A stretch of DNA of 60,164 nt, the filler included, from Hausera hauseri (lineage: Eukaryota): NCBI GenBank assembly GCA_046269625.1. It is 10 parts of 10 records of this genome, joined end to end, with 100 filler letters (N's around TTAATTAATTAA, not from the genome) between each part and the next. Parts side by side here need not be neighbours in the genome. Positions count along the whole stretch, not along the records: positions 17,489 to 22,233 come from JBJURY010452357.1; 9 more parts are not named here. The stretch is one strand, 5' to 3'. The notes below the pieces were generated by a model. It did no database searches. It saw only the letters and a list, made by a program, of their open reading frames with translations, and had not been told where the DNA came from. Positions 17,489-22,233 of this stretch are shown piece after piece (position 1 is the stretch's first letter; the number at the start of each line of letters is the position of its first letter). A program made the translations under genes and the position numbers.

Positions 17489-17626
17489 TTCGAGTAGTCG
17501 AATTAAAAATCGGGTCCGAGATAATGACAAGACCTGTGAATAAAATGTGCAGGATCGATGAGAAAGTAGAAGATTGGGTGGGTTGTGATATATTTAAAGA
17601 CCGGATTACTCCAAGGAGGGGGCAAA
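17489..17626 (+). mobile_element. 3' end of a BEL/Pao integrase (DUF5641-like tail) followed by a polypurine tract
   Basis: RVVELKIGSEIMTRPVNKMCRID; AAGGAGGGGGCAAA immediately before TG at 17627. Confidence 0.7.
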
Positions 17627-18154
17627 TGTTGGAACCCGACTGACTAGTTGGGTAATCCGGGAAGCATGAAAAGTTATAAAGGAAGGGATGTAAATAGTGT
17701 ATATATAGATGTAATTGCATATATGTATATAGGCATGTATATTTGATTGCACATGTTGTGTTTAAATATTAGTTGTTGGGGGTTGGAATTGTAAAGTGTG
17801 TGTGATGTAAAAACAAAACATGGAAAATATTGAAAGGATGAACCCTGCCGGGGTTTGCGTAATGAGAATGAATGATTGTATGTTTGATAAATTCAGCACG
17901 CATGTTTCGGGCCAAAATTTTAAAGGTGGAGAGAATCCCCCGAAGAGCAGCACTCCGAAAACAATGGCTAAGTATTGTGAGAAAATTAATCTAAATGTTT
18001 TTTATATGATTATATATTGTTTAAGGGGGGTTTGGGATTGTCAGAGATTTTAAAAGGGAAAACACATGATATCAAAACGAGTTGGACATTTAAATATTAT
18101 GTAAATCCAACAAAAACGAATTTATTATTTAAATGTTGTGATATTGTTCCACCA
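17627..18154 (+). repeat. BEL/Pao LTR (528 bp)
   Basis: TGTTGGAAC...GTTCCACCA (8/9 inverted terminal match), with PPT upstream and PBS 2 nt downstream. Confidence 0.8.
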
Positions 18155-18156
18155 AA

Positions 18157-18174
18157 TGGTAGCAGAGCGTGGTT
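18157..18174 (+). promoter_or_regulatory. Primer-binding site complementary to initiator tRNA-Met
   Basis: TGGTAGCAGAGCGTGGTT matches the 3' end of animal tRNA-iMet (...CTCTGCTACCA). Confidence 0.85.
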
Positions 18175-18424
18175 GCTGCTCTGCACCCTGATCTGCAAGC
18201 AGCGGCCACGGCTCCTTGTCTTGTTGAAGATTCCTTCTGACCTCCTCGTATTCGGATCTTCCTCCTTGAACTGTTTAAAGAGTTTTTATTCGCTTGCGGC
18301 AAAAAACCAATCCGTGAACCCGGCTAGTCAAATAAAGATAAACAGATTGGAAAATAGTTCGGGTTCTGGGTTGGTGATGCTGCCTAGGGAGCCTGAGGCA
18401 GAGTGCCTTTCGAATTCATACACA

Positions 18425-21400
18425 ATGGCCACGGTTCTAGAAAGAACCTGGCTAAATAATAAATTGAGGAAAAGGAGAGAAGGTAATTATGTGGAAGGAT
18501 TTAAAGGTGTGAAGAACGATATTGGCGAGGAAGAGAAGGCTATAATAGAAAAGGAGCAAAACTCATCGCAACTCCAAAATCACGCTTCCAAAATCGTTAA
18601 TGAGAAGAAGGACTCTACGACAACGAATAGAGATGTTAAACAAGTGTATGTAAGAATAAGAGAGGGTAAGCTAGTGCAGATCAACTTAGAGAAGGTTAAA
18701 TCTTTAAGCGAGTTGCTTACCGAAGTCGAAATAAGATCAAAAATATCCGTGAGTTCATTGAAGTTATTCTATCAGGGTAAGAGGATAACGACTGATAAGG
18801 ATGTGGAAGATTTAACCCATGGAACTACTGTGTACATAGTCGTTGGCCTTAAGGGAGGAAGCAAACATGCCAGCAAGAGTTACGAAAAGAAGCTTAGGGC
18901 GAGTTCAGAGAACGCCAAACGAAGAACGAAAGAATTCGAAACAAGGTTTTTAATGAAGGATAAATTGAAATCTAGGCTAGAAAGTATCCACGGAAGGATA
19001 TATGTCGCCAATTCTGAAGAAAAAATTCGGAAAACCTACGATGAATTTTGCGCAGTCTATGAGGAAACTGTCTCGGAGATACTGGAGCTCCAAGTCATGG
19101 CGAAACAACAGAGCAGAACAGATGAACTGGAAGATCTGATTCAGGACAGGGAAGTGCTGAGTCAGCTGAATGCTGATGTAGTGGCAGGGTTGCGAGGTAT
19201 AGCCGCTAATCGAAGCGAACAGGAGAGAAGTCGTCAAGAGATCGCGGAGGCTACAGTGAATAATAATTTATGTCCTCGCCTGAGCCGAATCGAATTGCCG
19301 AAATTTAGTGGACATATTGCTGATTACGAGAAATGGAGGCAAACCTTTGAAGTTTGCGTACACCGAGCTCCAATATCCATAGTAGAGAAGCAGTTAAAGT
19401 TAGAAGATTGTCTCAGTGGAGATGCTAAGAAATTAGTGGCGAATTTTGGCATCAGTGAGACGTCTTACGCGGCAATTCTACAAAAGCTTGAGAGGTTTTA
19501 TGGTGGAGATCAAAGAAATTTCGCGGCGTTAATCGATGAAATCCGAAAGTTCGAAAAGGTGAGTGTAAATAATATAAAACAAATAGATAGTTTAGTTTCA
19601 CTATTGGAAGCTGTTACGGTACGACTGAGAATCATGAACAAGGGAAACGACTTAGATAGTGTACTACTATATAAGATCATTTTGGAGAAGTTACCAGAAG
19701 CCTTGATAAGCCAGTGGGAAAGGCACCGACGGAGTTGTCAAAAGGAAGAGAATATCAGTGAGTTGAAATATTGGCTAGAAGAAGAAGCGGATATACGCCG
19801 CGTATCTGCTGAATCCGCTCATGGTATAGATGTCCTAGAAAGAAAGGAACCCAGAAGTATAAGGCATGATGATTATCGACACATCCAAAGTAGTGACTAC
19901 CGTCAAAAGCATGGTTCAGAAGAAAAGAAGGTAAACTACCACCATAACCATTTTACAGAAGTCAAAGAGAAGGCGGCAACCGCAAAAGGCGTATGTTGGG
20001 CGTTTGAGAAGGGAAATTGCACTTTCGGAAAAGAGTGTAAATATTCCCATGGAAAAAAGGAAGAGAAGAACGAAAATAAGAGCAAAATGTGTAAATATTA
20101 CCAGCAGGGGAACTGCAGAAATGGAGACAAATGTCGGTTTTCGCATAGGAGAGAGAGGTCAGTGGGACGAATTAGTAATCGTGAAGGTACGACAGAGAAC
20201 AACAGTCAAGAGAAGTTGGAAGAACCATCACAAAATAGAAATGAAAGAAACGTGAAAGAGTCAGACGAGCTTGGGAGCGATCAAAAGAAGAGTTACGTAA
20301 CTGAAAGACATAACCAAAAAGAAAAAAATGAGGTGTCGTTGAGGACGATCCCAGTGATTGTGCGTAATGGGGAATATGAGGAGAAGATCAATGTATTGTT
20401 AGATGATGCTAGCACGGACAGCTACATCAGCACTTCACTGGCAGGAAGGTTACGATTAGAACAAAAACCAGAGTCGATTTCGGTAGAGGTCTTAGGTGGC
20501 GAAAAGAGAAAGAAGAGTGCAGCAAGAGTTGAGTTTCATTTAAGCAATCTGAATAGAGAACTAGAAGTGAAGGTATCAGCACTGACAATCGAAAATGTGG
20601 TAGGTAATTTAAATGCTATAAATTGGAGCATATCTAGAAGCAGATGGAACCATCTAAGAGAGGTACCCTTCCCAACAATAGTAAAATCAGGGAAAATCGA
20701 AGGGTTGATCGGAGTAAATTACAGTCAACTTCATCGAGCTATCAAAGAAGTATCCGGGAAGGAAGGGGAGCCTATAGCTCGACTAACACCGCTAGGATGG
20801 ACCTGTATCGGACCGACATCTACAAAAAGACCATTTCAGAAGCGATCGAACTTTATTAGATGTTTCTTCTCGAGTGGAGAAGAGTTAAAGGATGATTTAG
20901 AGCGGTTGTGGAGGTTAGAGGACATGTTAGAAAAGAACCAACCGTGGACAGAAGACGAAGAGAGAATAATGGAAAAATCCAAGGCTGAGATGCGATACGC
21001 GAACAACAAGTACGAAGTCAAAATCCCATGGAAGAGAAATCCACAGGACTTGCCTGATAATGATCGGATCGCTAAAAGACGGTTGTCGCTGTTGGAGAAT
21101 AAATTGGGAAAAGATTTGGAATTAAAGGAGGGCTATCAAAATCAAATAGTCGAACATGAGAAAAAAGGGTATATTAAAAATGTGACAAACGAACTGAAAG
21201 ACAAGGCGACTGGGTGGCTTCTACCACATTTTCCGGTTATAAGAAGAAGTGCGGAAACCACAAAGATTAGAATAGTATTTGACGCAGCGTCAAAAAGTAT
21301 GGGTATTAGTCTAAATGATCTGATCCACCAAGGTCCCAAATTGCAATTAGACCTGGTAGATATATTGATAAGATTCAGGAAGTATGAAATTGCCATGGTA

Positions 21401-22233
21401 TGCGATATCACAGAGATGTTCCTACAAATTGGAGTAGCACCAGAGGATCGGAAATACTTAAGATTTCTCTGGAAAGAAGAAGAATGTGTGAAAGTTTATG
21501 AGTTTCAACGATTGGTGTTTGGGTTGAATGCAGCTCCATATTTAGCGCAATTAGTAAGCCGAGTAAACGCGGAGAAACACGTAAAAGATATACCCAAAGC
21601 AGCATGGGTGGCTACAAACGCCACTTATATGGATGATAGTTTGGTATCTGTTAGGACAGAAGAAAAAGCGGTAAAGATGTATCAAGACTTAAAGTGGTTA
21701 TGGAGTCAGGCTGGGATGAATGCAAGGAAATGGGTATCAAATTCTGAGAAGTTACGCGAAATCATACCGGAAGATGAAAAGTCGGCGTGCTATCAGATCG
21801 TAGAGGAGGAGACAAAGACCAAAACTCTAGGCATGAGGTGGAATGCCAACAGTGATGTGTTCTCATTCGATAGAAGGGTCCAGTCAGAAGAGATAACTAC
21901 AAAAAGGAAGTTTTTGAGCTCGGTAGCAAAAATATTTGACCCATTAGGATTCCTTAGCAGTTACCTAATGAAAGGAAAATTAATCATTCAAGAGATGTGG
22001 ATGCACGGTGCAGATTGGGATGAACAGCTTCCAGACTACTTAATCAAACGAGCGAAAGAATGGGTAGCAGAACAACAGGATTTGGATCAGATTCAAATAA
22101 AACGTGTATTAATATCAGACCAGTCCCAATATGAGGTACATATATTCTGCGATGCATCTAAAGATGCCTATGGAGCGGTCGCTTATTTGGTCACCACAGG
22201 AGACAAGAGAATTAGCAACATAATAGTGGCGAA
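18425..22233 (+). CDS. Intact BEL/Pao Gag-Pol polyprotein (3' cut by contig end): Ubl - DUF1759 capsid - 2x CCCH - protease - RT - RNase H
   Basis: Ubl 18638-18859 ending GLKGG; IELPKFSG..YEKWRQTF; CCCH fingers 19994-20146; LLDDASTDSYI; TPLGWT; LPHFPV..TTKIRIVFDAAS; YMDD 21626-21637; IFDPLG; HIFCDAS..AYGAVAY. Start is probably ATG 18377 or 18425. Confidence 0.93.

Follow-up and report, generated by a model that had tools for sequence, protein, structure and literature searches.

What does a ubiquitin-like domain do in front of the Gag protein of a retrotransposon, and how did it get there? The question is raised by one element in a stretch of DNA of 60,164 nucleotides from Hausera hauseri (assembly GCA_046269625.1), in which 10 parts of 10 genome records are joined with filler between them. 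This whole stretch is called the window here and all positions count along it. The element occupies the piece at 17489-22233 (JBJURY010452357.1) and belongs to the BEL/Pao group of long terminal repeat (LTR) retrotransposons. A preliminary description, made from the sequence alone, had reported a ubiquitin-like domain (Ubl) with a di-Gly end ahead of Gag and had suggested its release by host deubiquitinases. We find that the domain belongs to the ubiquitin family, that according to a tree of the Gag core it marks one well-supported BEL/Pao sub-clade, and that its C-terminus carries the features of a ubiquitin fusion precursor. It may act as a processing signal for host hydrolases, and this reading is weighed below against four others.

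A ubiquitin-family domain in the Gag-Pol frame

The Pfam families found on the translation from 18425 follow the order Gag, protease, reverse transcriptase (RT), as in BEL/Pao (E-values in Table 2). The BEL/Pao signature is present, namely Peptidase_A17 (PF05380) together with RVT_1 carrying YMDD, and both the DUF1759 Gag core (PF03564) and the DUF1758 aspartic protease (PF05585) lie upstream of the RT. With all four families matched, the assignment made in the preliminary description holds: the element is a BEL/Pao member by each feature that can be assessed in the piece, which ends inside the Peptidase_A17 region. Of the terminal features, the piece shows just the site at 18157 that resembles a primer-binding site; an LTR pair, RNase H and integrase fall outside it.

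The Ubl shares one unbroken frame with Gag-Pol. Codons 18638-18859 translate to KQVYVRIREGKLVQINLEKVKSLSELLTEVEIRSKISVSSLKLFYQGKRITTDKDVEDLTHGTTVYIVVGLKGG, 74 residues ending in LKGG, and the codon 18860-18862 encodes Ser, as had been reported for 18638-18862. On the N-terminal piece the Pfam ubiquitin family (PF00240) is matched with E 5.5e-5 and 23.3 bits, against a gathering score of 25.4 bits. A phmmer search of the PDB aligns the domain with Gln2-Gly76 of ubiquitin, with one two-residue gap and with the di-Gly placed on G75-G76. The single-domain match to NEDD8 has an E-value of 1e-4, and the much lower values returned for polyubiquitin are inflated by its repeats. A hidden Markov model (HMM) for which only ubiquitin domains of relatives were used matches the Ubl in the six-frame translation of the piece (E 2e-6, profile positions 2-77 of 77).

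Structure prediction gives the same picture. Run without an alignment, AlphaFold2 yields the strand and helix order of ubiquitin at a predicted local distance difference test (pLDDT) of 70-84. The same order (beta-beta-alpha-beta-beta-3/10-beta) is obtained with an eight-sequence alignment, at a pLDDT of 70-85. Foldseek matches the model to ubiquitin and NEDD8 chains with target-normalised template modelling (TM) scores of 0.76-0.82, root-mean-square deviations of 2.1-2.7 Å and 18-25% identity. These two methods bear out the beta-grasp fold that had been put forward.

At the sequence level, the Ubl is about 20% identical to ubiquitin (hand count on the alignment). Retained residues are Q2, V5, G10, K11, I36, L43, G47, K48, D58, V70, L73, G75 and G76, and the altered ones include L8 (now R), I44 (F), H68 (Y), R72 (G) and R74 (K). 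The LKGG motif falls on L73-R74-G75-G76, at the end of strand 5. Conversely, the Leu8-Ile44-Val70 patch and Arg72 are not conserved and read R, F, V and G in this element. The domain is therefore of the ubiquitin family by fold and by C-terminus, not by its recognition patch.

Relatives carrying the fusion

An exhaustive HMMER search of 1.84 billion representatives, with the Ubl, the linker and DUF1759 as query, gave 2047 matches, the best 150 of which were scanned. Among the matches listed, at least seven further Gag proteins share the junction and bear, ahead of it, a ubiquitin domain or just the tail of one (Table 1). At least four of these domains exceed the Pfam threshold for ubiquitin. 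In at least five of them, P0004, P0010, P0027, P0043 and P0070, the Ubl profile and Pfam scans find ubiquitin followed by DUF1759. One of these, P0043, runs on into DUF1758 and is hence a polyprotein. The closest relative among the matches listed, P0001, is N-truncated, and P0002 is among the closest. Recurrence of the architecture in divergent elements, as the preliminary description had claimed, is thereby extended.

Table 1. Carriers of the fusion, with the Pfam ubiquitin match and the residues around the junction (the slash marks the proposed cut)
Carrier	Pfam ubiquitin match	Junction	Remark
This element		IVVGLKGG/S	
P0002		AFKLKGG/S	begins inside last domain strand; ubiquitin tail only
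P0004	E 4e-28, 97 bits	LTLRLRGG/S	
P0010	E 4e-22, 78 bits	LALRLRGG/S	
P0027	E 1e-25, 89 bits	LVLNLYGG/S	
P0043	E 4e-11, 43 bits	LLLKLRGG/G	N-truncated
P0063		LLLRLKGG/M	begins inside last domain strand; ubiquitin tail only
P0070	E 7e-7, 29 bits	LLMRLKEG/N	

The carriers are deeply diverged. Their domains are 20-72% identical to ubiquitin; those of the other carriers share 33-68% identity with one another and 15-24% with the Ubl of this element, and the Gag cores are 20-35% identical. Downstream of the junction, an acidic patch, a basic helix and a long coiled coil precede DUF1759 in all of them. The hydrophobic patch is better kept in some relatives: L8 is present in P0004 and P0027 and is Ile in P0010, while Ile44 is present in P0004 and is Leu in P0010 and P0027. 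An HGT motif had been described as conserved; it is not, as the relatives have KES, QGS, NGS or KGS at this place, followed by T.

Two of the proteins found by the search run into host-like coiled-coil domains, CFAP58 and CCDC149 (P0002, residues 920-993; P0030, residues 371-529). These stretches probably reflect read-through into flanking host genes or chimeric contigs.

Other searches added little. A word-indexed protein search returned zero matches with region 1-300, one Ubl-less polyprotein with region 147-445, and three DUF1759 proteins with a profile of Ubl-less relatives. These near-blank results say little because the family is too diverged for exact 5-mers. Scans of IMG/VR with alignments A1 and A2 gave zero relatives. 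With the ubiquitin-bearing alignment A7 the same database gave 80 viral contigs (L016-L095), many from giant viruses, that hold plain ubiquitin genes with 49-83% identity to the P0004 domain; DUF1759 occurs in none of the 80. In two of these contigs, L016 and L017 (6-8 kb), the match extends 46 residues past the GG.

The Gly-Gly junction

Equivalents of L73 and G76 are present in all eight carriers and the complete GG in seven. An L[KR]GG end had been described as kept. This stands for Leu and the last Gly, but P0070 has LKEG and P0027 has LYGG. The following Ser, also described as conserved, is found in five of eight carriers; the others have Gly, Met and, in the GG-less P0070, Asn. Pro is found in none of the eight. 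Wherever GG is kept, the next residue (Ser, Gly or Met) is not a destabilising N-degron residue.

In the AlphaFold2 model the tail and junction (residues 158-165, numbered from 18377) form the sole low-confidence stretch (pLDDT <50) between two folded modules, which fits an exposed linker. Taken together, the features of a ubiquitin fusion precursor are present: a complete ubiquitin-type monomer, the GG, and a residue other than Pro at P1' (the position directly after the cut).

Copies of the element in related genomes

Sequencing runs of four organisms yield hundreds to thousands of contig pieces that map to 17489-22233 with 80-100% identity. These matches indicate that the element is multi-copy and present in several related genomes. 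Contigs of all four independent runs span the bins of the Ubl start, the Ubl body and the junction.

Within the Ubl, twelve well-supported differences are located at 18670-18732. Translated by hand, they comprise five silent changes and seven replacements, most of them conservative (K to N, L to I, I to V, V to I in two cases, E to A, I to R). This pattern is compatible with constraint on the domain, in a sample too small and non-independent for a test. In one run (X1), a contig joins 18663 to 18875, so that 211 bases, almost exactly the Ubl and the junction, are skipped or replaced. At least one copy may thus lack the domain or carry another in its place.

A probable single origin of the fusion

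For the DUF1759 region, with the Ubl columns left out, a careful maximum-likelihood tree of 49 rows and 190 columns was computed. All eight carriers, together with three N-truncated rows in which the state of the domain is not visible (P0001, P0003 and P0030), fall on one side of a single branch. This branch has 100% ultrafast bootstrap and 99% support in the Shimodaira-Hasegawa-like approximate likelihood ratio test (SH-aLRT). A caveat is that several carrier rows stand on long branches, but the separating branch, with a length of 0.99, is itself long. On this tree one change suffices to explain the distribution of the Ubl.

The opposite side of the branch holds 38 rows without a Ubl. In nine of them the absence is real, since at least 220 amino acids (aa) lie upstream of DUF1759. 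As a negative control, 15 more distant metagenome Gag loci were translated in six frames and contained no Ubl. Earlier, a quick 137-row tree had shown scattered carriers; it was set aside, for P0043 and P0063 were unrecognised as carriers at that time and the long branches were poorly resolved.

The tree thus points to one ubiquitin capture underlying the clade and, on this phylogenetic ground, the fusion is taken to mark one well-supported BEL/Pao sub-clade. A hint to the source comes from P0027, whose domain is about 72% identical to ubiquitin (hand count). The six residues before it, MRVKCG (144-149), align with the LRLRGG tail of a preceding polyubiquitin repeat. Judging from this alignment, the source was probably a polyubiquitin gene or transcript, and divergence came afterwards.

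The captured domain could be a neutral passenger that arrived by template switching and is not yet lost, its di-Gly being present by descent only. Retention was not forced, as the Ubl-less relatives demonstrate, and yet the domain is still open and foldable where the Gag cores have diverged so far; moreover, its invariant residues, L73 and G76, are the two most critical for cutting by hydrolases. In favour of a passenger one can cite the long drift of the Ubl of this element away from ubiquitin, the loss of GG in P0070 and the X1 contig, which skips or replaces the domain. On balance we regard this explanation as quite unlikely.

Proposed processing by host hydrolases

We propose that the domain is a processing signal through which host deubiquitinases release the leader-Ubl from Gag-Pol, and we rate this as somewhat better than an even bet. 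The single Gag-Pol frame encodes a short leader, then a domain derived from host ubiquitin, then Gag. The mode of action of the domain would be that of ubiquitin in natural fusion genes and in cytopathogenic pestiviruses, with C-terminal hydrolases of the host, acting on ubiquitin or on a Ubl, cutting behind Gly-Gly while the chain is being synthesised. The cut would free a leader-Ubl protein and leave Gag-Pol with a new N-terminal Ser (Gly or Met in relatives). A cleavable di-Gly would also spare the polyprotein the degradation met by uncleavable ubiquitin fusions, and the ubiquitin fold may in addition aid the yield or folding of a long polyprotein.

Three lines of reasoning speak for cleavage. 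First, Leu73 and the glycines are the tail residues most needed by hydrolases, and these are the residues that heavy divergence has spared. Second, Pro at P1' blocks deubiquitinases; it never follows the GG, and a stabilising residue does so wherever GG is kept. Third, uncleavable ubiquitin fusions are degraded via the ubiquitin-fusion-degradation pathway, which would exert pressure to keep the fusion cleavable.

Several observations weigh against this proposal. In the Ubl of this element the L8/I44 patch is gone and neither tail arginine remains (R72 is now G and R74 is K), so that a general deubiquitinase may no longer recognise it; if the Ubl is cut, the enzyme may rather be a Ubl-specific protease. 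A leader of 71-87 residues stands ahead of the Ubl, unlike in the cellular ubiquitin-ribosomal protein fusions. P0070 is devoid of the di-Gly, although it is possibly a dead copy. Most of the relatives are short metagenome or transcriptome contigs, and P0027 has an HSP90 fragment upstream of ubiquitin (residues 76-141, Pfam E 1e-11). Its contig may be partly chimeric, or host sequences may build up in the leader.

Fragments such as this one and the CFAP58 stretch of P0002 are signs of chimeric or host-flanked contigs, and one may ask whether the fusion as a whole is an artefact of assembly or gene modelling in which a host ubiquitin gene and a transposon have been joined. Here, however, it lies in one continuous frame of 1269 codons, counted from 18425, without a stop, and four independent runs cover the start of the Ubl, its body and the junction. 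Eight sequences have the same junction. A chimera with a host gene would be expected to show about 100% identity to ubiquitin, against the 20-72% found. An artefact is, in our judgement, exceedingly improbable.

With about 20% identity to ubiquitin and with L8, I44, R72 and R74 changed, recognition by hydrolases is uncertain, and the domain might instead stay attached as an integral UBL of the Ddi1, Rad23 or Parkin type. In that case Gag or Gag-Pol would be linked through it to the proteasome, ubiquitin receptors or components of the endosomal sorting complexes required for transport (ESCRT), and its role would lie in controlling the assembly, trafficking or turnover of particles, not in signalling a cut. 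To our knowledge, a C-terminal di-Gly is generally absent from integral UBL domains, whereas the carriers keep L73 and G76 without exception and GG with a single one across deep divergence. Furthermore, a ubiquitin fusion that is not cleaved would normally enter the degradation pathway named above. Several parallels speak for such a domain: a UBL and a retropepsin-like protease occur together in Ddi1 (PMC7072860), the Ddi1 UBL-ubiquitin complex 2mws is among the fold matches, and ubiquitin fused to retroviral Gag can substitute for a late domain (PMC2768365). We consider an integral UBL unlikely, but not far-fetched.

Alternatively, the released Ubl may be the point of the cut. It could be a modifier that is conjugated through E1 and E2 enzymes, or a decoy that jams ubiquitin-dependent host defence, a role previously proposed for baculovirus ubiquitin. 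E1 enzymes select ubiquitin through Arg72, and its equivalent is Gly in this element and Asn in P0027. The altered Leu8/Ile44 patch of this element, Val in place of K48 in P0043 and the variable leader that a released product would bear also speak against this role, and no trait needed for conjugation only is conserved across the clade. What supports it is that conjugation requires a free C-terminal GG, that P0004 and P0010 retain the canonical LRLRGG tail, and that K48 is kept in this element and in four relatives. As an explanation of the whole clade, a modifier or decoy seems very doubtful.

Returning to cleavage by the host, its full version is about as probable as its negation in our estimate: one capture was followed by long retention as a built-in cleavage module, and host deubiquitinases, not the protease of the element, would make the first cut in Gag-Pol. 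Such processing may also yield the leader-Ubl as a distinct protein that has its own function.

Comparison with known systems

The nearest functional counterparts are the ubiquitin inserts of pestiviruses and, among cellular genes, the ubiquitin and FUBI fusions. In the pestiviruses (bovine viral diarrhoea virus, BVDV, and classical swine fever virus, CSFV), ubiquitin coding sequence of the host is likewise captured into a polyprotein. Those inserts are sporadic, recent and nearly unchanged, and they are located ahead of NS3 in RNA viruses. In contrast, the present insert is old, clade-wide and strongly diverged, and it precedes Gag in reverse-transcribing elements. The cellular fusion genes (polyubiquitin, Ub-eL40, Ub-eS31, FUBI-eS30) resemble it in that a ubiquitin or Ubl ending in GG stands directly before its cargo, and the Ubl of this element aligns to them across the junction. 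FUBI shows that a Ubl can diverge and still be processed by a hydrolase dedicated to it. The cellular fusions differ in that the cargo here is a retroelement polyprotein, that a leader is present here, and that the ribosomal fusions have a far less diverged Ubl.

Canonical BEL/Pao elements (Belpaoviridae) share the DUF1759 Gag, the DUF1758 protease, an RT with YMDD and Peptidase_A17 in the usual order. The ubiquitin domain sets the element apart from the 38 nearest Ubl-less Gag relatives and from the 15 metagenome loci, and its CCCH fingers differ from the CCHC knuckles of its relatives.

Ddi1 and artificial Gag-ubiquitin are looser parallels. Ddi1/Ddi2 combines, in a single chain, a UBL and a downstream aspartic protease of the retroviral type (PMC7072860). 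Unlike the present element, this is a cellular protein, with no Gag behind its UBL and no release of the UBL at a di-Gly. In experimental retroviral fusions, ubiquitin placed in cis to Gag has a functional effect (PMC2768365), yet these constructs are artificial, C-terminal and non-cleavable, and the role of ubiquitin in them is in ESCRT-dependent budding. Such budding may be unneeded by an element without an envelope gene.

Full-text literature searches, which did not cover Repbase, Dfam and GyDB, found no earlier description of ubiquitin in BEL/Pao Gag, and co-mentions of DUF1759 and ubiquitin were confined to unrelated passages. Within this scope the novelty suggested in the preliminary description is upheld, and the architecture is apparently undescribed so far.

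Organisation of the element

The piece contains a young BEL/Pao LTR retrotransposon without interruptions, of which the 5' two thirds are present (Table 2). A single long plus-strand frame is free of stops from 18017 to the piece edge at 22233, and the minus strand has only short open reading frames (ORFs) of at most 95 aa. Scans of the piece with Rfam and for tRNA genes gave zero matches.

Table 2. Features of the element at 17489-22233 of the window
Feature	Position	Strand	Basis or remark
Presumed 3' part of 5' LTR, edge-cut	17489..18151	+	directly upstream of the site resembling a primer-binding site (PBS); no long ORF
PBS candidate, TGGTAGCAGAG...	18157..18176	+	direct sequence reading
N-terminal leader	18377..18637	+	87 aa from ATG 18377, or 71 aa from ATG 18425
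Ubl, probably ubiquitin-derived beta-grasp, ends L-K-G-G	18638..18859 (Pfam match aa 75-140)	+	profile, alignment, model
Gly-Gly-Ser junction, proposed cut site after GG	18854..18862	+	same junction in seven relatives
Basic stretch and three long helices (coiled coil), Gag start	18863..19303	+	AlphaFold2
DUF1759, BEL/Pao Gag core	19304..19738 (aa 294-438)	+	Pfam PF03564, E 2.5e-17
Two CCCH zinc fingers (C-x7-C-x5-C-x3-H)	19994-20050 and 20090-20146	+	Pfam zf-CCCH_4, E 7.7e-14; pattern search
Aspartic protease, DUF1758	20384..20722 (aa 654-766)	+	Pfam PF05585, E 2.2e-5
Reverse transcriptase	21353..21721 (aa 977-1099)	+	Pfam RVT_1, E 1.6e-9; YMDD 21626-21637
Peptidase_A17 region, edge-cut	21899..22233 (aa 1159-1261)	+	Pfam PF05380, E 4.7e-30, profile positions 1-105 of 162

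We take the PBS candidate to be complementary to the 3' end of the eukaryotic initiator tRNA-Met. If this match at 18157 holds, the sequence before it would be the end of the 5' LTR. Contigs from other copies break or join at about 18106-18174, near this presumed end. Bin 18125-18283 has the highest contig depth in all four runs, as is expected for a motif common to many copies.

Between the PBS candidate and the Ubl, the only in-frame ATGs are those at 18377 and 18425. The preliminary description had set the Ubl ahead of Gag, which is correct, but it is not at the very N-terminus, as 71-87 residues precede it. In most family copies across the four runs, position 18425 is G and not A, which turns the ATG of 'MATVLE' into GTG; the ATG at 18425 is particular to this copy or its sub-family. 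For this reason 18377 is the likelier start, with a leader of 87 residues. Position 18421 is listed beside 18425 at this variable site. The leader has zero matches to Pfam families, and AlphaFold2 predicts two helices in it at low confidence.

Upstream of the first in-frame ATG, the frame is open for another 120 codons (18017-18376), which span the PBS-like site and contain no ATG. At this base composition the chance of such a run is estimated at about 4e-4. Candidate causes are chance, non-AUG initiation or a spliced upstream exon.

Downstream of the junction, three helices are modelled at 166-210, 214-244 and 248-294 (numbered from 18377) with a pLDDT of about 90, and this region is homologous in every Ubl-bearing relative. 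The DUF1759 model is all-alpha (pLDDT 75-89). The CCCH pair is also present in P0002, while CCHC-type knuckles occupy the same Gag position in P0008, P0047, P0036, P0043 and P0010. The pair looks like a second domain swap within this sub-lineage.

The protease carries the motif LLDDAST at 20396-20416. It thus reads Asp-Ala-Ser in place of the usual Asp-Thr/Ser-Gly of retropepsins, and the same motif is present in P0002 and P0043. The nearest language-model clusters of the ESM Atlas are generic DUF1759 or Pao-type polyproteins, mostly from arthropods, and are uninformative on the Ubl fusion.

Implications

For annotation, the fusion carries a warning: ubiquitin matches that adjoin DUF1759 belong to a transposon and not to host genes. 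The clade also forms a graded series, from 72% to about 20% identity with ubiquitin, at the far end of which only the fold, Leu73 and the di-Gly survive. Such a series is a natural experiment on the minimal needs of ubiquitin-type hydrolases.

Retroelements are held to process their polyproteins with their own aspartic protease. If the proposed processing is correct, these elements would have ceded one cut to the ubiquitin hydrolases of the host, a form of host dependence that would be new. For a retroelement, such stable use of a ubiquitin fusion by an entire clade would be a first, and it would form a natural, long-lived counterpart to the sporadic ubiquitin inserts of pestiviruses.

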